Shown here: piece by piece, positions 42,501 through 57,845 of the stretch
How the letters are laid out: every line of letters starts with the position of its first letter
Numbering within the stretch: the stretch's first letter is position 1
Source: Zygnema circumcarinatum SAG 698-1b
Lineage: Eukaryota; Plantae; Zygnematophyceae
Assembly: GCA_037447605.1 (NCBI GenBank)
Contig: CM074820.1
Coordinates: forward strand, 124,001 to 188,000
Reading direction: 5' to 3'
DNA: 64,000 bases
Made by a program: the position numbers and the translations under genes
Notes under the pieces: model-generated
Databases searched by the model: none
Seen by the model: only the letters and a program-made list of their open reading frames with translations
Told to the model about the DNA's origin: nothing

Positions 42501-43900
42501 TCAATATCGTGCAAGCTCCTTTCTCGAAGAGCTCCTCGCTGCCAATATCCGCTTCTTCTCCTCCTCCCCCTCCTGCATCCTTTCAGCGAATCTCAAACCT
42601 GGCCACGCCTCCGAAATAATGCCCACAGAAATATCATCCGCCTGCAGCGCCCCCTCCGCGGGGCCCTCCTTCAAAAGCAGTAGAAGAGCCGCAAGCGCAT
42701 CGGGAACAAGCACTTCCCTGGTTTCATATATTTCAATTTCAGCACTTTCAGTTCCATGTCCGCATGTCGCAGTCACAGTCACTTTCCTCATCTCCCCCAT
42801 GAGCGCGTCCTGCAAGTTCTGGTCTCCCTCCGTGAAGGGAACACCCAATAGAGTGGAGGCGTGCGTGTCTTCCTCGTAAAAATCCTGCACACAAAGTCAG
42901 TCATCATCGCACAATTAGCACTATAAAATGACAGAGATAATTACAAAATCAGGAACTTAAGGGGAAATCAGCACAATCAACTGCAACCAAAACTGTGCAG
43001 AATACTAGAAACCCATCCATGCGTTTTTCGGAACTTACATTTTCCCCCAATTTCTCAAAAACCCAAAACTGTAAGCTTCAGGATATATAAAATAAAAAAG
43101 AAAAAAAAAACCCTTACCTCGAAGTTCCCGTTAGACCCCAAAATTTGGTTTTTCAGGATGTTTTTGAGCACTCTGAAAGTCGCATTCGCAGACCGAAGAA
43201 GCGCCAAAAATTCTGGTTTTTGAATGAGGCGCTCGTAAGCTGAGTCCACAGGAGACAAGAGGATCGCCGACGGCTGGTCGGCCAATAGGAGGTCGACACC
43301 TGTCGCCATCAGCAGCTTCCGCGTAGTCGAATGCGCGTCCCCCATCGCCCTCAGCGCGTTGTGAATTTTAATTCTCATAAGGTCGCGGAGAGGAATGTTC
43401 TCCGCACACTCCCTGTCATCCTCTGCGTCGTCCCCCTCCTCCTCCCCTTCCTCCCCCTCCTCGCCAGGCTCCATGGCCTCCTCCGTCTCCCCTCCTTCCT
43501 CCGCTTCTTCTTCTTCCAATTCTTCATCCAATCCTGTTCCCATCTCTGTATCCCCTTCCATCCCCGATTCCGTTTCCGTTTCCGTTCCCATGTCCCCTCC
43601 TCCGTATTTCGGAGCGAGTCGGGCGAAAAACCGCAGGACGTGCCCGAGCGCGGACTGAACGGTGGCCGCCTCGCGGATGATGACATCATTCGCCCGCTCT
43701 GCATCACTGACATCATCGTCCTCGCTGACGTCATCGCGCGCTGCCACGACCCCCCCCCGCGCCTCCTGCTCGCGGAGGAGGGGATCAGAGCTCAGGATGG
43801 AAGTCTCAGAGAGGTCGGGAGGGGTCAGGGAGGAGACCGCACGGAGAGGGCACGCCAAGAAGAGCAGGAGAGGGAGGAGGGAGAGGCGGGAGGGAGCCAT
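42501..43900 (-). CDS. Secreted acidic protein with a divergent fasciclin (FAS1) domain, 388 aa (exons 43900-43118, 42884-42501)
   Basis: Signal peptide, E/D-rich spacer, FAS1-like H1 AILLSPVDSAY, LKNILKNQIL, STLLG, H2-like IYETREVLVP; phase-0 GT-AG intron. Confidence 0.75.
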
Positions 43901-44061
43901 GGCTGCGCGAGGGAGAGGGAGAGGTTGGAAGGGAGAGGGAGAGGGGGAGAGAGGGAGAGGGAGGGAGGGAGACAGGGGGAAGGCGAGGGCGCAAGGGAAC
44001 GCAGCCTCCACATCGGGCCTTTCTGCTGACAAGTGGTCCGAGACTCCCAATGGCGGGACGC

Positions 44062-44945
44062 CACGTGGGCACGAGCTGTACGCGTGGCGAGCCACTATTG
44101 CTCGGCGGGCCATGCGCCGTAATGACACCTGACAGGCGGTGGTCCACCACGTGGCGCGCCTCGGCGGGTGCGGACAGAAAGGCGGGGAGCGGCCGCACGT
44201 GCGGGATTTGGGCACGAAAAATAAATTAAAAAAATTGAGAGCCGACAGAGGCTGAAGGAAATGGTTGAACTGGGGTGGCGTTGAACTTGTGGACCTGCGT
44301 TCGCGGCTTCTGGAATAGTTCAACACCTTGGCTGGGAAATTTTCGCAGATGATAACTTCGAGGCTTGGATCCACCATGGAGATAATCGCGGATCTGCGTA
44401 ATCTGATCCGTCCGATTCGCATCCAATGGCTGTCACAGCACCGGACTCCGTGAGAGTCACAACTTCATCGATTCCAACAATTTAGGCGACAGGCCAAATC
44501 TGTACGGCAAACCCATTTCCCAAAAGCTGGACAGGTCCGGAGCAAGTTCCACCTTGAACATGTCCGCCAGCAAATTTTGCTAAAAGCCAATTTCAAATGG
44601 ATTTTGTTTCTGAAACTTCGCAATAGGTTTTGCCGTATTTTTTTGTGTCAAGTACCTCGGTAGTCCAATTATGGCCGTCATCGATAAATCTAACCTCCGG
44701 TCGCCGCAGGATTCTGAACACGGAAATTCTCACCGAAAGGGCGGCAGAATTTTATTTGGCCTGAGATGGGGATCAATGGCGAGCTGCCACGTCAAGCTTG
44801 ATTGATAAATTTTCGGATTGGTCGCAAAGTAAATACAAGAGGTTTACGGACCGATGAAATGAATCAAATCTCAATCGCGACACGTAGCCGCACGTGTGCA
44901 TGACGCTCCAAGTGGATATGCCACGTAAGTTTCGCCGTTCACGTG
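44062..44945. promoter_or_regulatory. ACGT/G-box cluster upstream of the FAS1 gene
   Basis: CACGTG at 44062, 44148, 44196, 44891 and 44940; CACGT(A/C) at 44788, 44881 and 44922. Confidence 0.55.
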
Positions 44946-45085
44946 AGGGTCAGGTCAAGGTCGGTCAAGGACCCGACAAATCGACATAATTCAGGTGTTC
45001 GTCACATGGAGCCGCCGTACGGATAGGCCTGGTCGGTGCGGGAGGGGCTGTGGCCGCGGGCGGAGGACGGGCGAGGGCCGCCAAA

Positions 45086-45181
45086 GGACATGGACATGGA
45101 CATGGACATGGACATGGACATGGACATGGACATGGACATGGACATGGACATGGACATGGACATGGACATGGACATGGACAT
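45086..45181. repeat. (GGACAT)16 microsatellite
   Basis: 96 bp of perfect hexamer. Confidence 0.97.
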
Positions 45182-45329
45182 GGTGGATGGATGCATGCAC
45201 AGACACGCGCGGTCGGTCCATGGCGGTCAGCGGTGTGAACGAGGGAGGTCGGGACTCGCCGGGCACTCGGTCGGAGGCTTCGCAGGTGGGAACGGATCGG
45301 ATCGACTGCCGCCGCTGGCAACAGGCGGA

Positions 45330-46380
45330 GGGGAGAGGCAGGCGGGAGCGGGTGGAGAGGGAGAGGGAGAATGACAGGGAGAGGGAGAGGGACAGGGAGA
45401 GAGGGGAGGGAGGAGAGGTAGAGGAGAGAGAGAGGGGAGAAGAAGAGGCAGAAGAGGAAGAGGAAGGGCAGAATGAGTGGTAGAGGGAGCGGGAGAGGGG
45501 AGAGGAGAGAGGGAAGGGCGAAGGAGAGGCAGAGAAGGGCGAGGGAGAGGGAAGAGGAGAGGGGAGAAGGAGAGGCAGAGGAGGGAGAGGGAGAGGGGAG
45601 GAAGGGAGGTGAGAAGGTGAGGCAGAGACGGGCGAGGGAGAGGGGAGAGGAGGATGGGAGGGGAGGAGGAGAGGCAGAGGGAGAGGGGAGAGTAGAAAGG
45701 GAGGGAAGAAGAGAGGGCGCAGGAGAGGGGAGAGGAGAAGGAGAGGCAGAGAAGGGCGAGGGAGAGTGGGAAGAGTGGAGAGGGGAGAGGAGAAAGGGGG
45801 GGGAGGAGAAGAGGCAGAGAAGGGCGAGGGAGAGTGGGGAGGGGAGAGGAGGAGAGGAAGTGGAGGGAGAGGGAGTGGTGGCAGTGGAGGCTCGAGAGGA
45901 GGGAGGGAGACAGGGGATATGGAGGAGAGAGGGAGAGAGAGAGAGGGGAGGGAGTGGTGGCAGAGGAGGGAGAGGGAGAGGAGAGAGAGAAAGGAGGGGG
46001 TGGGGGGAGAGGGAGGGGAGGGGGGGAGGAGGAAGAGGGAGAGTAGCGGTATGAAGTGGAAGGGAGAGAGAGAGTGGGGAGTGGGAACGGGATAGAGAGA
46101 GTTAAGTGGTTGAGGAAGACGGATCGCGAGATTGCCGGAGTGAGGGAGGGAGAGGGGAGCGGGAGGAGGGAGGGAGCAGAGAGAGGACTGTGGGTGACAG
46201 GCGACTGGACGGGAGGATGGGAGAAACGGAGAAAGTGAGGGGGAGGGGGATGGGAGGCATAGGAGTCATGAGGGGATGAGAGAGGTAAGCGAGGGAGGGA
46301 GGGAGGGCGGGACTACGTGTGTGTGAGAGGCAATGGCGGGAGGACAAACTCCGTGAGAGAGAGGCAAGAAGTGAGTGAGA
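45330..46380. repeat. GA-rich low-complexity tract
   Basis: About 1 kb almost entirely G/A on the plus strand. Confidence 0.85.
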
Positions 46381-46549
46381 GTGAGAATGGCATCATCATA
46401 GATGTCTTTGTCAAAGACTGCTTCCACCACTCAAGGAAAAATCATCACTTCTAAACACAGAAAAAAAATTACATTTTCAATTTAAGCAGGTATTTTAAAT
46501 TGTTCGGCGTGTTAAAATAATTTTAATAGATTAAGAACTGAAATTCCTG

Positions 46550-47155
46550 CTACCACGTCATCCTCCCAGCGGGAACACGCTCCTTGGTGAGAAGCAGCAG
46601 CTTCCTAATATTAAACCCAAAGCCTTTCCCGTGCTTTCCCCAAATGCCATTTGTACCCCTTTCGTAGTCATCCTCAAAATTTAAATCGTCATCGTCATTG
46701 CTGTCTTCGGCAAAAATGTCGTCGGATAAAGGGTCGTCATCTTCACTGTTTTTAGAAAAAGGAGAAAAAACGTTAACCTTGGAACACAATTCGAAGATCC
46801 GATTCAAGGGAAAGATAAGCGTACTGTGGGGCCCACTTTCTGACGGGTCCACTTTGTCGGTATCATCGCCAGAACCTTCAAAATCCAAAATTGCGTTTGG
46901 GTCTTGCTCATCATTCAAATAGGAGGAAGCATCGGTCGAGTCAGATGGCTCCCCACTGTTTGACTCCGACTCGAGAAAAGCCTCCTCAGAGTCCAAACCC
47001 TTCATGAAATTTTCTTCAATAAGAGCGTCTTGAATGTCTTGTTTTTCGGGCAGCAGTTCTGAAGAGGTTGTGACGGCGCACACGAGGGAGGGGAAGGCGA
47101 GAGTGAGGAGGAGAGAGGCGACCAGGAGGGAGAAAGCGGGAGAGGGAGGAGACAT
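46550..47155 (-). CDS. Secreted acidic orphan protein A (201 aa, single exon as read)
   Basis: MSPPSPAFSLLVASLLLTLAFPSLVCA signal, long D/E/S-rich region, ends FNIRKLLLLTKERVPAGRMTW*; CT-rich leader like neighbouring genes. Confidence 0.7.
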   Translation of the reverse strand: MSPPSPAFSLLVASLLLTLAFPSLVCAVTTSSELLPEKQDIQDALIEENFMKGLDSEEAFLESESNSGEPSDSTDASSYLNDEQDPNAILDFEGSGDDTDKVDPSESGPHSTLIFPLNRIFELCSKVNVFSPFSKNSEDDDPLSDDIFAEDSNDDDDLNFEDDYERGTNGIWGKHGKGFGFNIRKLLLLTKERVPAGRMTW

Positions 47156-47363
47156 GACTGGAGGAGAGCAAGGATACAGAGTGAGAGAGAGATACGCAAG
47201 GGAGGGAGAGAGGGAGGGAGAGGGAGAGAGGGGGAGAGAGAGGGAGGGCGCGGGAGAGAGATAGAGAGAGAGAGAGTGAGAGAGAGGGAGGGAAGAAGGG
47301 CGGCGCGCCGAGTGACCAGGGAGGCGAGTCCTTGCGCCGGCGCTTGCAGGGCACTCCAAAGGT

Positions 47364-47459
47364 GTACGGCCGACTGCTTTCAGATGTACGGAACCGTTGA
47401 CCACGGGTTTCGTACAACCTCTGGATTTGGCGTCACCTGAAAGTACAGAGTGAGTGTAC
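47364..47459. promoter_or_regulatory. GTAC cluster upstream of orphan A (5 cores in 96 bp)
   Basis: GTAC at 47364, 47386, 47412, 47443 and 47456. Confidence 0.55.
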
Positions 47460-48143
47460 GAACAAAGAGGCGGTTGTGATTGGAGGGACAAACCGGGCAG
47501 TTAAATCCTTACCCTGATTGGCGGGTCGATTGGGAGAGAAGCAAAACTTGAGATTTACACTTGTCTAAGCGCCGCGTGATTGGAGGACTTCACTGAAGAT
47601 GCCGCGTCGGGCAGTGAAAAAAAAGTAGTTTGTTTTGCCCTGAAATCTCGGATAGTCGGTACTTAGTCCTTAAAGCCGTTGACTAATCCGGTTAACCAAA
47701 TTCTAAATCTTCGGAGTCCAAATAAACGGCCCAATCAGGAGACGGCGGCAACCGACCTCTCTCCATGTGCCGACGCAGTTGAACACAGCCGTTCCAAATA
47801 TGTTTAACTCTCAGATTACAGTATTTACACGCATATAGCCAAATCGACCTGTTCCTTGCCATCTCTTGTTCGGCAAATCTGTTGATCCACTTGACTGATC
47901 TTCTGTTGTCGGTCAATCTGATACGCGAATCCCCTCGCGCGTGTTCACCGTCCAGCTTATCCACTTTTGATCCTGGATCCAGCTTGCGATCCGATTCCAC
48001 TGTGCGGCCGCGGCAGTTGTCATCGTTCCTTCAATGAATGCCAGCCGCAACTGCCCCCGCCCACATGGAACGCCCTCCCGTTACCGGCACCTGCCATCCT
48101 CAAGGGTCGTCGTCCAACTCATATAGCCAATCGCATTGAAGCC

Positions 48144-48293
48144 GTACGATGACGTGGCGTCGTAACGTCCAACATCCGTACTTAAATACAGAGTACAGAG
48201 GTACAGTACTAGCTCGTTTGTCGTTAGCGCTGTGCCGGTACCGTAAAAACATTCAACTGAATTGTACGTTGTCCGTACTGCCACGTCATGTAC
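48144..48293. promoter_or_regulatory. GTAC cluster upstream of orphan B (9 cores in 150 bp)
   Basis: GTAC at 48144, 48178, 48193, 48201, 48206, 48238, 48264, 48275 and 48290. Confidence 0.6.
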
Positions 48294-48444
48294 GGCGCGG
48301 GCCACTGCGAGCTAAAGCGGCCGCGCCCTCCGCTCTCTCTCGGGCACCGCCACTTTCCTCTCTCCTCTCTCTCTCTCCCTCCCTCTCTGCCTCTCTCTCT
48401 CCTTCTCTCCATCCCTCTCTCTCTCTCCCTATCTACCTCAATCC

Positions 48445-48888
48445 ATGGCTACCTCTCCCTTATCCGCGCTCCTCCCCTCCCTCCTCCTCATGCTCATCCT
48501 CACCACATCCGCCGATGCAAGCGCTGAAGCGGCTACCGATGTGACCGAGCCAACCGAAAGCGAGGTGACAGCGGCGGCGTTCGTGAGGGATTTCCTCACT
48601 CAAGAGGCGAAGCTGGAGGCGAAGCTCAACACGAGGATGGGCGACGCGGCGATGGAGGATTCGGAGTACGACGACAATGCAGATTCCTTCGTCGATCGCG
48701 GTTTTCTGCGGTCCGGATTCGGAAGAATTTTGAGTCTGTATGCGAAGCTGGCTGCGAAGGCGGCGAGGGAAGAGGGAGGGAGGGAGGGAGAGAGGGAGGG
48801 AGAGAGGGAGGAAGGCAGCGACGGAGGCGCGACGGAGGAGTGGCGGAATGTGGCAGAGAGGAGGGCTTTAGGGAGGAGGATGCTGTAG
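48445..48888 (+). CDS. Secreted acidic orphan protein B (147 aa)
   Basis: MATSPLSALLPSLLLMLILTTSADA signal, acidic region, amphipathic SGFGRILSLYAKLAAK, ends ERRALGRRML*. Confidence 0.72.
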   Translation: MATSPLSALLPSLLLMLILTTSADASAEAATDVTEPTESEVTAAAFVRDFLTQEAKLEAKLNTRMGDAAMEDSEYDDNADSFVDRGFLRSGFGRILSLYAKLAAKAAREEGGREGEREGEREEGSDGGATEEWRNVAERRALGRRML

Positions 48889-50174: not shown

Positions 50175-52550
50175 TTAACCCTTGAAATGCGACGGTACGT
50201 GCTTGGGAACCAGATCTTCCAGCACTTCAAGTTCCACCTTATGGCCCTCCGGGACTTCCCAGGGCTTCCATTCTGCGATCAAAGAATATAAGAAAACAAA
50301 GTGTGAAAATTCGAAAAGTGAGGAAAGGAAAGGCAGAGGAAACAGGAGGAGGAGAGGGAGTGGGGGAAAGAGAAGGGATGGCAGAGGGACAGGGGGAGGA
50401 AGGGACGAGGGGAGAGGGAAAGGGAGGAGAGGGAGAGAGAGAGGGAGAGGGAGAAGGAGAGGGCGAGGGGGAGAGAGAAGGAGAGAACAAGAGAGGGGAT
50501 GGCAGAGGGACAGGGGAAGGGACGAGGGGCGAGGGAAAGGGCGGAGAGAGGAAAGAGAGAAGGAGAGGGAGAGGGAGAGGGAGAGGGAGAGGGAGAGGGA
50601 GGGGGAGAGGGAGAGGGAGAGGGAGANNNNNNNNNNGGGAGAGGGAGAGGGAGAGGGAGAGGGAGAGGGAGAGGAAGAGGAAGAGGGGGAGGGAGAGGGA
50701 GAGGGAGAGGGAGAGGGAGAGGAAACGGGCGAGGGAGAGAGGGAGGGGACGCAGAGGAACGGGGAAGGGAAGGGACGACGGGAGAGGGAGTGGGAGAGAG
50801 AGGAGAGAGAGGGAGAGGGCGACGGGGAAAGAGAAGGAGAAAGTGGGGAAAGGGGAGGAGAGCCGGTATAGAAGTGATAAGCACCGTACGAATTAAACAT
50901 CATCCAAAAAACGTCGTGACTCTCTTGTCCCAACCTGTCCTCTCCCTCACTCAATTTTTCCTAACTCTGATTCAGATAAGCGTCTCTGCAGGGTAGTCCC
51001 TTCGCATAAGTATTTCAGAGAGTCCCATCACATTCCCACATAGCTACGCTATTCATTTGTGAGGAAATTCTCTTCAGTAAATCATGCAACACGAGCAAAC
51101 TTGAAATTTAAAGCATGTCTCCAACCCAAGGAGGAGGCTTGCTGCGGTCCTGAACCCTGCGCTAACATCATGCCTTCTCGAGGACTCTGAAAAATGGAAA
51201 AGGAAGGGTGAGGAAAGGATCCTCTATGACTGTGATACTACGAACCCTAAATCTCCAAAAACCTTGAAAGTACAAGATCCCTCAGGTTCAAGAAAATCCC
51301 CAATCACAGGAACCCTACAAAACTCTAAAAAACTTCAGAACAATTGAATAGTAAAGCCTCAGAATCTCCTATACAACCGAAGCTCTTCCAAAGGCTACAA
51401 CAAGCTCTTCGAACCCTAAGATTATCAGAGAACCCAAAAAATCACCACACTTTGCGATACTGCAATACGCAGAAATACTCTGAAACTCCCCACTACTCAT
51501 TATTTCTCCAATAGAACCCTAAATTCCCAGAAAACCGAAAATCGAAAACTGAACGCCACAACCCGCAAACTAAAATCCCCACATTCAAAATGAAAATCTC
51601 AATCACTCTTCTCCGGCCCCCTTCGAGCACTTCTCTCGACGCTGAAACATGAAATTTCCCGACCCCCTTCGAACCAAAACCGAGTTCACCTCGTCCATTG
51701 TAAAGTAGCCCTCAAAAATCTAAAGCCCAAAAACCAACAAACCCGAAGAACCTCAAACCCCAACTTACAAATCGTAAATATTTAACCCTAAAAAGTCTCC
51801 TGTCCACACATACCATCATTGATAAAGAGCTCTTTCAGCTCATTCTTCAACAACCCTAAAAACATACCCCAACCCCCCCCCCCCNNNNNNNNNNCCCCCC
51901 CCCCCCCCCCCCCCGGCCCCCCACCCCCAACCCCATGTCCTGAACCCCCGTACTCCTGCATCCTAACCCTAAACCCTACACCCCAACCCCAACCCTAACC
52001 CGAAAACCCTAAGCTTAACCCTAAACCCTAAAACCTTGACCGCAACCCTAACCCTAAACCCTAAACTCCAACCCCAAGCCGAACCCTTGAACCCTAAACT
52101 TCAACCCTAAACTCTAAACCCCAACCCTAACCCTAAAACCCTAGACCCCAACCCTAAACCCTAAACCTGAAACCCCAACCCTAGACCGTGCCCTGCCTGC
52201 CTGGCTTGCTGCCTGCCTGCCTGGCTCTGACCTGCCATCTTGGGAATGAGTTCAAGCTCGTCCCTGGCCTGGCAGATGAGCTCCTCGACCTGCCCGCACG
52301 CCACGCGCGCCTCTACGTCCGCCGCGTCCCGCGCCTCCTCGCAGGCCTTCAGGCGGAAGGCCGTGAGCCGCTCCACGCTGCGCCGGTACTCGGCCTCCGC
52401 GGGGACCGCCTGCACTGCGCGCAGCGTCTCGCGGTACAGCTCTATCAGTACTGCGCGCGCATCTGCGACCACGGGCAGCCCCACCACGCCCGTCGACTCC
52501 TTCTGCGCCGTCGACAGCAGGGAGGACCGCGAGAACCGCCGCAAAAACAT
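50175..52550 (-). CDS. NDUFA5: Complex I subunit B13 (exons 52550-52232, 50272-50175)
   Basis: STGVVGLPVVADARAVLIELY..CGQVEELICQARDELELIPKMA/EWKPWEVP..PKHVP; phase-1 GT-AG intron. Confidence 0.95.
51960..52185 (+). repeat. Degenerate CCCTAA/CCCTAAA/CCCCAA telomere-like repeats at the 5' end of the NDUFA5 intron
   Basis: Read directly; sparser AAACCCTA-like units extend back to about 51240. Confidence 0.88.
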
Positions 52551-52554
52551 GGCA

Positions 52555-52595
52555 AGGGTTTAGGGTTTAAGGTTTAGGGTTTAGGGTTTAAGGGG
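52555..52595 (+). repeat. (TTTAGGG)n-like telo-box array just upstream of the NDUFA5 ATG
   Basis: agggtttagggtttaaggtttagggtttagggtttaagggg. Confidence 0.9.
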
Positions 52596-52875
52596 TGAAG
52601 AGAGGAGGGGGAGTTGAGGAGGGGAGTCAGGGTCGAGGGGGAGGGATTAGGGTTCAGGCGGGAGAGGAGAGGGGGTCCAAGCGCTTTAGGGTTGGGAGAG
52701 AAGGCCCCAGGACCGGAGGGCGAAGGGGACCTCGTTCCATGTACAGTAGACGGTTCCAGTTCCCTTTCTGTTCCTGTTTCATATCGTGAGAAATATAACG
52801 GGACGGCTGTACGGCAAGGTACATGTGAATGTACGAACCGTTTGGACGTATGTACTGTACAACTTATGAAACTAT

Positions 52876-53036
52876 TAGGGGGTGTCAGACTTAAAAAATT
52901 TCAGTACGCGTGTTCGTAAGTTTGACATCAGAACGAGTACTCCAGTATAATAGCGATCCTCCTGCGGCGGAGTACTTTCGTAACCTTTTTTTTCGTAACG
53001 CTTTTCGTAAGATTTTGTTAAGTCTGACACCCCCTA
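52876..53036. mobile_element. Candidate MITE (157 bp with TA flanks, 17 bp perfect TIR)
   Basis: TA-GGGGGTGTCAGACTTAA (52876-52894) pairs with TTAAGTCTGACACCCCC-TA (53018-53036); AT-rich noncoding interior with four TTCGTAA. Confidence 0.7.
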
Positions 53037-53573
53037 TTGAAGGCGGGAGAGCGGGAGAACCGGGCGGAACGAGCCCGGGATTAGGGCGGGCTGGCTGGCT
53101 GGCCAGGCGCGGAATTAGGGTTGGGAGGGAGCCATGGATAGGGTTCAAGGCCGGATGGAAAACCAATTTTGTATAGATTTTACGGATTAGGATTTAAGAC
53201 GCCGCCCAACCGAGCGGGTCTGAAATAGGGCTCGACGAGATTCCATCTTTCAAAGTTAGGGTTGGGTTGCAGGGACTCGGCAGGGGCGCTTGAGAGGGTA
53301 CGGAATTGTCTCGCACGCGGCGGTGGCAGACACTGGGTGTGGCAGCTGAAAGCGGGGATAAGGCGAAACAATTGTACGGAGAATTGGCGCTCTCTTTGGA
53401 AGGGTATGTAAGGTATTGTCTTTGCGCTCCTTGAGAGGGAAATGGCAAACAGGAGCGGAAATGGATTACGCAGAGTTTATTAGCGTTTCTAGGGTTATGG
53501 AATTCCAATTGGGTTGCAGGGTATTGTAGGGTTTGAAAAAGAAGTTGGGACTTGACAGCTTGAGGATTTGGGC

Positions 53574-56500
53574 ATGAGGCAGAGAGGGAGAGGTGGTGGG
53601 AGGGGAGAGAGGGAAGGACAGAACAGGCGGACGGGCGAAGAGGAGAGGGAGGAGCGGGAGCGGGAGCGGGAGAGAGAGAGAGAAAGAGAACGAGAAATAG
53701 TCAGAGCGAGAGAGAGAGTATGGGATCGAGTGGGAAGGAGACATGGAGAGGCGGAAAGAACGGCGCAGGTCAAATGGAGGGAGGTAAGGAAAACTGATGT
53801 CCAGCACGGAGACAGAGTTTCCGTGAAAAAACGTCTTGGAATTAGAGTTACGGAATCGTTTGGGCAAGCGAAGGTGACGGCGGACCTGCGTTATGCACAT
53901 AGAGAGCGGGGAGGGAGTGAGCGGGCAACAGGGCCCGGCGGCAAAATTTCTGCTGAGGAGGGAGGGGTGGGAGGGGCTTGGAAATTTGAGGAAGATAGGG
54001 GTACGAATGGGGATAAGGAAGAAGCCCTTTTGTTACGGGAAGAGAAGGTGGCATTGGGTCCGTCACGGGGAGTTCATAGAACCGCCCCCCTAAAAGTTCC
54101 GTCTTTCGTTCAAATTTCTCCAAATTCAATCGCCGTATCTCTCCATAAACCACTGGATGAAGCCAGGAATGGAGGAACAGCTGGGAGTTTATCGGAATCA
54201 GATGAAAGTTCGGAGGAAACTTCATCAACACCGTCACCTCCGTCACAGCAGCCGACTTTGGAAAAGTTTGGTGAACCCGAATTTCCGAATCGGTCTGAAG
54301 GTTTCATGATGGGGTTAGAAAATGGCTTTGTGAATTCGGGAAGTTTAGAGAATTTTTCACCTTTGGGAGGATCTCAGGGAAGGTCAAGTATGGCTACGGA
54401 AGCGGGTGGAACGGAGTCGAACGATAGAGAAATGGAAGTTGAGATGGGACAGGCGGTGGGTTCAGAGTCACAGAATTTGGAACAAGTTCATGATGAGAGG
54501 GATTATGAGAACGGAGGAATGGGGTTAGACGGTGAAATGGGCGGGTCGATTTTTGGTTTGAAAGTGATGAAGGGATGTGTGTATGGGAAAGGGAATGAGG
54601 ACGAGGAGGAGGAAGAGGGAGAGTGGGCGAGAGATGGTAGTGGGGAGGGAAAGGGAGAGGGAGAGGAAGAGGGAGAGGGAGAGGGAGAGCGAGAGGGAGA
54701 GGGAGAGAGAGACGGAGAGGAGCGGGTGCTGGAGTGGGAGAGGGCGAGTGGAAAAGCAGAACGTGTGGAGGATGGGGTTTCGGATGAAGGGAGAGGAAAG
54801 GTGATGGAAGGCGCGAAAACGGAGCAGAATAGTCTGGGAAGTAGTAGAGGGAGGGAGTCAAATGGGAGAGGGGATGAGGAGGGAGGGAATGGAGAGTGTG
54901 GGGCAATGGTGAAAGAGGTGGAGGAAGGGGAGGAAGAGGAAGAGGAGATGTTGGACTACGGAGAGTACGAGGAGAGAGAAGAAAAGAAGGATGGGGGATG
55001 GGGGGACAGGGAGGCGGGAGGAGGGGAGAGCGAGAGGAGAGATGCGGAAATGGATGAGAGCATACAAGGAGAATGTGTACAGAGGATATTGGGTGAAGGA
55101 GGGTGGGACATTGAGGAGAATGAGGAGGAAGGAGAATTGCCAAAAGAGGGAGAGGTAGAGGGTGAGAGGGAAGACGCGAGAGTGGAGGGGTATGAGGAGG
55201 AAGGCGAGTGGAATGAGAGAGAGGACGTTCAGGTAGGAGGGATGGAAAGAGGGAGTGAAGGAGGGGAGGAGGTAAGGGACAGAGAGGGGTATGGTTCCTT
55301 TTATCAGACGGAGGGATACTTCTGGGAGGAAGGGGGTCATGTTGTCGATGCGGCGGAGGGAGATGGAGATCGAGAGGGAGTGAGAGGGGGAGACGGAGAG
55401 GGAGACAGTGGAAAGGAGAGGGGACTTGTGGAGTATGAGGGAGAGGGTTTTGAGAATGAAGATAGAAAAGAGTGGGAGCGCGATGGGGAGGGAGCGGAGA
55501 GAGTGGAGGGGAAGAATATGGAGGAGGTGATTAGGGGCGAAATGGGAGAACGAGAGGATGGAAGTGAAGGAGCGAAGCGAAAGGAGGGGATAGTGGGACA
55601 TGATAGGGGTGGTGCCAAAGGGAATTTCGAACAATTTGAAGATGAATATGGTGGATATGGGAGGGGACAAGGCAAGCAACGAATACGGAATGCTGGTGTT
55701 GGTGATACTCAAAATTATGATTCTCGAGGGAGAGGAGGGATAGCGAGAGGCAGAGGAGAAATTGAAGGTACGCGAGAGAAAGGATGGAATGTTAAGCACG
55801 AGAGCGGAAGTGACGGGAAGGAGAGGGAGAAAGCGGCGGGGGGTAGTGGCGGATCAACGAGAGGAGAGAGGGAGGAGAACTTGCAGGCAGAGAAAGGAAT
55901 TTTGAAGGTCAGGAGGAATAGGGGGGGGATGCAAGAAGACGATAAGAGAAAGGAAGGACGAGAGGGTGGAGAGAGAGAAGAGGTAGGGGCCGATAGAGTA
56001 GAATCTGGGGACATGAAGAGAAAGCGAAAGGATGATGAATGCAAAGTGGGCGAAAGAGAGAAAGAGAATTTGAAAGGGAAAGAGAAGGAAGAGAGAGGTG
56101 CGAGGGAGACGGAAAGGGTGAAGGGGACCAAGTGGGAGGAAAGTGGGAAAGAGAAGAAGACGGACAAGGAGAACGACGAGCGAGTGAGAGTGAGGAGTAT
56201 TGAGCAGGAGAAGCACGGGGAGAAGAGAGGTCAACATCTGAACGAGCGGGAGAAGGAGAAAGGGAAGGAGGGCGGGAGAGAGGAGGGAAAGAGAGATGGA
56301 TTATCAGCGGACGTGAAGGGAGAGAAGGCTTTGAGAGAGAGGGAAAGAGAAAGAGCGAGAGAAAAGGATAGAATTAAGGAGAGGGAAAAGGAGGAGTTGG
56401 AGAGGTCAAGGCAGAAAGAGAGAGGACGAGGAACTAGAGAGGATGATGAGAGAGAGAGGAAGAGGAGGAGAGAGAAAGTTGAGGAGAAGGAGCCCTCGAG

Positions 56501-57845
56501 AGTGAGAAGTCGAGAAGGAGTGGAGAATGGGAACGAGAGGAAGAGGGAGCGAAATTGGGAAGATCTGAGAGAGAGAGAGAAAAAAAAGGCGATCAGAGAA
56601 GGAAGAGATGGAAGAGTGATGAATTCAGAGGGAAGCAGTAGAGAAAGATCGGCAGATATGAAGGGGGGCGAAGGGTTAGGGAAGCGAGAGAGGGGAGGGA
56701 GGGAGGTCGGAAGAAGTGTAGTCAAGGGTGATGTGGTAGAGGTTAAAGGGAGGGGAAGGGAGAGGGAGGATGGGGAGGAACGGAAAGAAGGAGAGAGGAG
56801 GATGCAAGAAGTAGATGGAGGAGCAAAAGAAATAGAAGGCAGAGGAGTGGAGGAAAAAAGTGAGGGGGAGAAAAAGAGACAGAGCAGACAGGAGAGAGAT
56901 GGTAAAAGACAAGGAGAAAGAGGAATGGAATTTTCGCCGGAGTCAGGAGAGATAGATGAGGGAGAGGAGAGAATAGGTGTGAGAAAGACAGTAGATTCAG
57001 AAGAGGAGGGAGAGGAGGTAGTAGTGGGATCGAGATGGGGCGGACTCGGAAGGGGAAGGTGGGAAGTGGAGGATGAGGAGGGAGAGGGAGAGGGAGGAGG
57101 AAGAGAAGAGAAGAACGAGAAGGGGGCAGAGCGAGGGGAGGAAGAAAGGTTCAGTGGGGAAGAGATGGGTCCAGAGTCGGGCAGTGCCGAAATTAATTCC
57201 GGCTCAAAAACGCCTCCAGCGGGCAGCTCTGGGAAATTTTGTGGGCGGCATATTGACATGCTTCAAGCCTGCCGTAGTGTGAATGAATTTTTGCAAATGG
57301 ATGTTTTGGGAGAGGGGGTTTATGGAGTAGTTCATCGAGCGAAGGATAAAGTGACAGGAGAGATTTCGGCCTTGAAGAGAGTGAAGTTGGATAGAGAGAG
57401 AGAGGGATTCCCTATGACTTCATTGCGCGAAATAAACATCTTGCTAGCGTTCAACCACCCGTCTATAGTAGACGTGAGAGAGGTGGTAGTGGGGAACGAT
57501 CTCGACAGAATCTATATGGTGATGGAGTACATGGAACACGATTTGAAGGGGGTTTTGGAGACCATGAAACATCCGTTCATGCAATCGGAAGTAAAGTGTT
57601 TGATGATTCAGCTTTTAGAGGGGACTAAATACCTCCACGAGAATTGGGTTTTGCATCGCGACTTGAAAACCTCCAATTTGTTGATGAATAATAAAGGGGA
57701 AATCAAAATTTGCGATTTCGGACTTAGTCGACAGTATGGAGACCCGCTTCGGCCATACACGCAACCTGTGGTCACTCTTTGGTACAGGTAAGAGCACGCT
57801 TCCTCTCTCTCTCCTCCCTCCCTCCCTTCCCTCTCTCTCCCTCTC

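Follow-up and report, generated by a model that had tools for sequence, protein, structure and literature searches.

A candidate cluster of secreted acidic proteins in Zygnema circumcarinatum that includes a likely divergent FAS1-like protein

We analyzed a 64,000-nucleotide stretch of the Zygnema circumcarinatum SAG 698-1b genome (contig CM074820.1, positions 124,001 to 188,000; hereafter the window) – eukaryotic sequence with GT..AG introns, plant-type telomere-like repeats, and long CT and GA tracts – in which three neighboring genes, here called F, A, and B, encode predicted secreted acidic proteins. An initial annotation made from the letters alone had described the three products as apparently related and proteolytically processed, with a FAS1 (fasciclin) domain in one of them. 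The reading that we favor, with moderate confidence, differs: the genes would be lineage-specific, with F encoding a divergent secreted protein with one FAS1 domain, B a possible FAS1-less relative of F, and A an unrelated acidic orphan. Coordinates of the features discussed below are collected in Table 1.

Reading of both strands recovered the three open reading frames (ORFs) where the initial annotation had placed them. A and B lie head to head with a spacing of 1289 bp, and F is on the same strand as A, 2.65 kb downstream of it. F consists of two coding exons, and read-through from exon 1 into the intron reaches a stop after 21 codons. Exon 1 encodes, in order, a signal-like start, an acidic region, an amphipathic helix, an acidic linker encoded by a purine tract, and the N-terminal half of a FAS1-like domain. 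The order in B is a signal-like start, an acidic region, a cationic amphipathic helix, an acidic stretch encoded by a GA tract, and a C-terminal helix.

Codon use in all three genes resembles that of recognizable genes nearby. Using a codon model trained on 878 codons from the Pfam-supported exons of the window (WD40, alpha/beta hydrolase, kinase, and others), we found that every piece of F, A, and B scores positively in frame and negatively off frame: 0.27 versus −0.32 for F exon 1, 0.19 versus −0.16 and −0.56 for mature A, and 0.36 versus −0.59 and −0.20 for B residues 25-108. These scores are on par with those of the training genes. Among the 323 stop-free segments of at least 80 codons in the window, B ranks 8th, F exon 2 9th, A 24th, and the F exon 1 ORF 37th.

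The claim that each gene combines a signal-like start with an acidic composition held up. F, A, and B all begin with a hydrophobic segment followed by a cleavage-type site of small residues, and the mature parts carry net charges of −36 (F exon 1), −28 (A), and −10 (B). Only eight ATG-initiated ORFs of at least 60 residues in the six frames of the window have a signal-like start, and F, A, and B are the only ones that combine it with a leader of at least 85% pyrimidine and a content of at least 22% Asp/Glu. The cluster is thus not a chance pick, and the three genes form a real, non-random group whose products, judging from their N-termini, would probably be secreted.

The evidence for a FAS1-like domain in F comes from the end of exon 1. 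When we searched its last 101 residues exhaustively against 1.84 billion protein representatives with phmmer, only two proteins matched, P0001 (E 1.1e-6) and P0002 (E 3.5e-5), both of them bacterial proteins of five or six Pfam fasciclin domains. F aligned in a single register with 11 repeats through helix 1, a Gly-Leu/Val-Asp turn, a degenerate H1 motif, and the helices that follow. A hidden Markov model (HMM) built from these repeats matches F at positions 3-63 of its 125 and finds its best match in the six-frame translation of the window in F exon 1, and it detects no further FAS1 piece close to A or B or within the F intron. The top match of this part of F in the Protein Data Bank (PDB) is TGFBIp, a protein with four FAS1 domains, again in the same register (E 0.06). 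Scores against single repeats are weak, at most 15 bits, with 34-37% identity over about 55-70 residues.

The divergence extends to the signature motifs. Where the H1 motif reads T-x-F-A-P-T-N/D-x-A-F, F has I-L-L-S-P-V-D-S-A-Y at the aligned place, keeping the Pro, the Asp, the Ala, and the aromatic residue and losing the Thr, the Phe, and the Ala before Pro. The Tyr-His motif (L-l-y-H-v) is absent, and the aligned positions of F read L-K-N-Q-I-L. No C-terminal beta-rich half with an H2 motif was recognized in exon 2, though by our own reading the length of this exon, with some 70 residues as far as a V-L-V-P stretch, would suit such a half, in which case the domain would straddle the intron. 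Other analyses of F added nothing: a word-based protein search with exon 1 was swamped by low-complexity words (0 of 8000 scored candidates passed), a PDB sequence search with the acidic extension gave no match, and exon 1 modeled by itself from its single sequence with AlphaFold2 (AF2) had a predicted local distance difference test (pLDDT) value of 48, too low for the model to serve in fold comparison. Taken together, the alignments suggest that F is most likely a very divergent FAS1-like protein whose domain is, over its N-terminal half, in register with bona fide FAS1 repeats.

We observed a weaker similarity between F and B. The two align colinearly outside their signal peptides, centered on the cationic amphipathic helix, and the 16-residue helices are, as originally noted, identical at 7 of 16 positions. 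The helices carry net charges of +3/+4 and have acidic stretches on both sides. Smith-Waterman alignment with the acidic tails scores 76, compared with 42.5±7.5 after global shuffling and 52.4±6.3 after shuffling within windows of 12 residues; leaving out the tails gives 47, compared with 28±5. Overall, z lies between 3.4 and 4.5 and p between 0.002 and 0.006. Consistent with these values, each of the two helices has the other as its best match when the whole window is translated in six frames (37 versus 27-29 for the next best), and B is the top non-self match in the window when F residues 25-165 serve as a phmmer query. The 3' untranslated regions of F, A, and B gave no convincing alignment. 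The similarity is suggestive of an old relationship without proving it, and B may be a FAS1-less relative of the N-terminal extension of F that descends from an F-like gene.

A shows no detectable similarity to F or B and, by these comparisons, is unrelated to them. Smith-Waterman comparisons with F and B gave p values of 0.08-0.78, phmmer searches of the window with A queries placed neither F nor B among the top matches, and A scored −1.7 bits against an HMM of the two helices. Judged by HMM similarity, as the initial annotation had proposed, the kinship of three fails for A and is borderline for F and B; what stands of it is the suggestive similarity of this pair.

The more obvious resemblance among the genes, on which the initial annotation had partly based their kinship, has another origin. 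From about −90 to +60 or +90 around each ATG, the sense strand of F, A, and B is 77-100% pyrimidine, and the signal segment of F is encoded by the downstream end of such a polypyrimidine tract. The second acidic linker of F and the acidic stretch of B are 77-100% purine; no such purine-rich simple sequence makes up the acidic body of A. At the DNA level, F, A, and B match one another almost entirely in the CT leader and signal tracts and the GA acidic tracts. Since these matches occur in many overlapping registers and on both strands, they represent simple sequence and not homology. The Leu/Ser/Pro-rich signals of all three proteins and the Glu/Gly-rich linkers of F and B look alike because they are translated CT and GA tracts, and this likeness is not due to common descent. 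The point applies more broadly in this genome: CT tracts that run across start codons mimic signal peptides and GA tracts in coding sequence mimic acidic linkers, so look-alike signals and linkers are no evidence of kinship here.

The upstream regions resemble promoters. The A-B intergenic region contains 15 GTAC sites, where about 3.3 are expected, clustered directly upstream of each gene, and holds one of the two densest GTAC spots in the window. A second dense cluster (52740-52980, 9 per 300 nucleotides) adjoins the NDUFA5 gene described below and lies upstream of it and of a kinase-domain ORF, which fits GTAC being a general promoter mark here. We take the GTAC clusters as signs of real promoters and not of a special regulon. 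Upstream of F there are five CACGTG G-boxes within 1060 nucleotides, where the density in the window predicts about 0.3. These include ACGTGGC-type cores, and two cores of this type also occur upstream of B (48152 and 48280). Zygnematophyte FAS1 wall proteins are known and rise under osmotic stress (PMC12820192).

If these assignments are right, the three very acidic products would be extracellular and for the most part disordered or helical. F would be a divergent one-domain FAS1 protein with a long acidic N-terminal extension, and would most likely use its FAS1 part to act in the extracellular matrix or the cell wall. B would be a small secreted protein, maybe an old FAS1-less relative of the F extension, and the part common to the two would be a cationic amphipathic helix set between acidic stretches. 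A would be an unrelated acidic secreted orphan that has a promoter island in common with B.

Several results weigh against this reading. For F, Pfam scans of each ORF and trimmed exon separately returned no FAS1 domain (PF02469, gathering score 22 bits), even at E<=10; exon 2 has no FAS1 match in Pfam, the FAS1-repeat HMM, P0001/P0002, the PDB, or the ESM Atlas; and the exhaustive phmmer search with the FAS1-like part found no eukaryotic relative and did not match F itself. The proposed FAS1 domain is thus upheld for its N-terminal half by the other searches and finds no backing in Pfam or in exon 2. For the F-B pair, phmmer E values with the whole window as search space are 0.17-2.2, which is not significant, and BLASTP with composition adjustment misses the similarity, as it returned E>0.6 for every pair among F, A, and B. 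For A and B, word searches with the non-signal parts found no relative and no self match – though such searches detect only relatives that share 5-residue words, and weakly support absence – and look-ups of the exact products found nothing on record, as was also the case for the NDUFA5 ORF. Finally, the signal peptides were called by a simple hydrophobicity heuristic alone.

Other searches with the orphans were likewise negative. At thresholds of E<=1 and E<=10, Pfam gave nothing for A and B apart from a meaningless TFIIA match for A (E 0.68). PDB sequence searches with B and mature A found no match, and the ESM Atlas held no usable match for A or for F exon 2.

The absence of any homolog or gene call for A or B raises an alternative that we consider unlikely: one or both could be chance ORFs near promoter-like islands, kept open by stop-free CT and GA tracts and perhaps part of non-coding transcripts. 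Length means little in this sequence, as the window has 75 ORFs of at least 130 residues alongside its 323 stop-free segments. The antisense of the B GA tract also has a high codon score, and ESM Atlas recognition values are low (1468 for A). What argues for real genes is that the frame-specific codon bias is clear in the non-repetitive parts of A and B, that each ATG follows a CT leader in the arrangement seen in F, that the cleavage-type sites are canonical, and that GTAC clusters lie just upstream of both.

The F-B similarity invites a bolder interpretation, which we hold to be doubtful: the two proteins would have in common a secreted module not described before, in which a cationic amphipathic helix sits within anionic disordered sequence. 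This module would be fused to FAS1 in F and free-standing in B, with the helix as its working part. Were this so, the helix could bind de-esterified pectin or membranes or be released as a peptide signal, and the pair would constitute a lineage-specific system that acts outside the cell in algae closely related to land plants.

Very doubtful, in our assessment, is the proposal of the initial annotation, in which F, A, and B form one family of prepro-proteins cut at R[KR]xL by an S1P-type (site-1 protease) subtilase to yield signaling, adhesion, or pheromone products. The motifs themselves are all present – RKLL in F and A, RRAL/RRML in B – and their occurrence in all three genes is mildly notable against a background of 0.098 per 100 residues in the six-frame translation of the window, yet the motif was picked after looking. 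The order of signal, acidic stretch, helix, and acidic stretch is common to the three, the weak F-B similarity fits a family, and SBT6.1/S1P is known to cleave RALF precursors at RRXL (PMC11371470). Against this, A is unrelated to the others by every test, and the position of the motif is unfavorable in each protein. In F, RKLL aligns with helix 1 of FAS1 in every repeat alignment that reaches it, and, being part of this first helix, it is no cleavage site of a linker. In A, the motif is followed by just 14 residues. In B, the motif sits at the extreme C-terminus within the most reliably predicted helix (block mean pLDDT 77-79) of an all-helical single-sequence AF2 model with low confidence (pLDDT 60), so cleavage would release five residues or none.

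The hallmarks of RALF precursors – an RRXL site upstream of a mature peptide of roughly 50 residues, a YIXY motif, and four Cys (PMC11371470) – are also missing: A and B have no YIXY, no four-Cys pattern (one Cys in A, none in B), and no Pfam RALF match. Processing of this type is not supported: in A and B the hallmarks are absent and at most 14 residues come after the motif, and in F the motif is located in FAS1 helix 1. The link that the initial annotation drew between Closterium PR-IP pheromone subunits and FAS1 found no support either; of the 12 papers listed among 20 matches in our literature search, none has PR-IP alongside fasciclin, a word that does not occur in the main PR-IP papers.

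Highly improbable is the view that the F extension and B, and perhaps the basic tail of A, give rise to cationic peptides that act on membranes or bind the wall and that anionic pro-regions keep inactive, in the manner of animal antimicrobial-peptide precursors. This purely architectural argument draws on the helix moments (0.60 in F, 0.62 in B), the helix charges and acidic flanks, and the basic, hydrophobic C-terminal tail of A. Against it, neither dibasic nor other clear processing sites flank the helices, the F helix belongs to a larger FAS1 protein, and Pfam and PDB searches gave no homology to known peptide families. A dehydrin- or LEA-like (late embryogenesis abundant) identity, considered for the acidic disorder, the amphipathic helix, and the upstream ACGT cores, was rejected given the lack of any match and the signal-like starts.

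Table 1. Features of the F, A, and B genes (positions within the window).
Feature	Position	Strand	Basis or detail
F exon 1, coding part, 261 residues	43118-43900	-	ATG at 43900; GT donor at 43117
F intron, GT..AG, phase 0	42885-43117	-	Sequence read
F exon 2, 127 residues + stop	42501-42884 (coding 42884-42504)	-	Codon score 9th of 323
F signal-peptide-like segment, residues 1-24	43829-43900	-	Hydrophobicity scan
F cationic amphipathic helix, residues 83-98	43607-43654	-	Hydrophobic moment 0.60
F FAS1-like N-terminal half, exon 1 residues 190-254	43139-43333	-	phmmer, repeat alignments, HMM, PDB
F RKLL	43310-43321	-	Inside first FAS1-like helix
F upstream region, five CACGTG G-boxes (44062, 44148, 44196, 44891, 44940)	44062-44945		Motif count
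Orphan A, 201 residues + stop	46550-47155 (coding 47155-46553)	-	Signal-like start, acidic non-repetitive body, basic C-terminal tail
A signal-like start	47075-47155	-	Hydrophobicity scan
A RKLL	46595-46606	-	In basic C-terminal tail
A-B head-to-head intergenic region	47156-48444		GTAC clusters 47364-47459 and 48144-48293, CT-rich leaders
Orphan B, 147 residues + stop	48445-48888 (coding 48445-48885)	+	Codon score 8th of 323
B signal-like start	48445-48519	+	Hydrophobicity scan
B cationic amphipathic helix	48712-48759	+	Hydrophobic moment 0.62
B RRAL/RRML	48859-48885	+	Last nine residues, C-terminal helix

The surroundings of the cluster are rich in repeats. Between A and F we observed a perfect microsatellite, (GGACAT)x16.3 with 100% matches (45086-45183), and about 750 bp of GA-rich simple sequence (45331-46081) with nested periods of 13, 47, 68, 133, and 192 nucleotides that opens long spurious ORFs on both strands. 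Short runs of N, translated as XXXX, interrupt simple-sequence tracts at about 50500-50560 and 51850-51900 and are probably assembly gaps. Beyond B, degenerate plant-type telomere-like repeats (CCCTAAA/TTTAGGG; 51960-52180 and 52555-52600) flank a small minus-strand ORF (52164-52550) that Pfam identifies as the complex I subunit NDUFA5 (E 4.9e-22). A 1407-codon open frame (53568-57791), almost all of it GA-rich and coding for Glu, Gly, and Arg, ends in a Pkinase domain (Pfam E 3.3e-41); the N-terminal exon or leader of this kinase gene is very long and of low complexity.

F, A, and B are of modest value in themselves: they make up a small group of secreted orphans that offers no handle on function. 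Should F prove to be a genuine FAS1 protein, it would illustrate the extent to which a domain of adhesion and cell-wall proteins can drift in the algae closest to land plants.

Antimicrobial-peptide precursors with anionic pro-pieces, such as those of the amphibian dermaseptin type, have a signal, an acidic region, and a cationic amphipathic helix. F and B have the same order of elements and nothing more in common with these precursors: there is no homology, no processing sites flank the helices, and F has a further folded domain. RALFs and group-2 pectin methylesterases processed by S1P/SBT6.1 combine a signal peptide with R[KR]xL, as do the genes of the cluster. They differ in that A and B lack a RALF or pectin methylesterase domain or a sizeable mature part after the motif, and in that the F and B motifs are located within helices.

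The fasciclin-like arabinogalactan proteins (FLAs) and other secreted FAS1 proteins of streptophytes are, like F, built of a signal-like N-terminus followed by FAS1-like sequence, and the FAS1-like domain of F has one N-x-T site. In contrast to FLAs, F has no clustered Ala/Ser/Thr-Pro glycomodules (13 Pro in all, nine in exon 1 and four in exon 2), has a long acidic extension in place of arabinogalactan-protein regions, and ends in a charged, hydrophilic tail without a glycosylphosphatidylinositol (GPI) signal. It also fails the Pfam model, with its degenerate H1, its missing Tyr-His motif, and its unrecognizable C-terminal half. Because it lacks both arabinogalactan modules and a GPI-type tail, F is not an FLA. 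By sequence, its counterparts are P0001 and P0002, its sole significant matches, and human TGFBIp (beta-ig-h3), its top-ranking one in the PDB. These proteins contain four to six FAS1 domains where F would have one, and share with it, in register, helix 1, the Gly-Leu/Val-Asp turn, and an x-x-x-A/S-P-x-D/N-x-A-F/Y segment.

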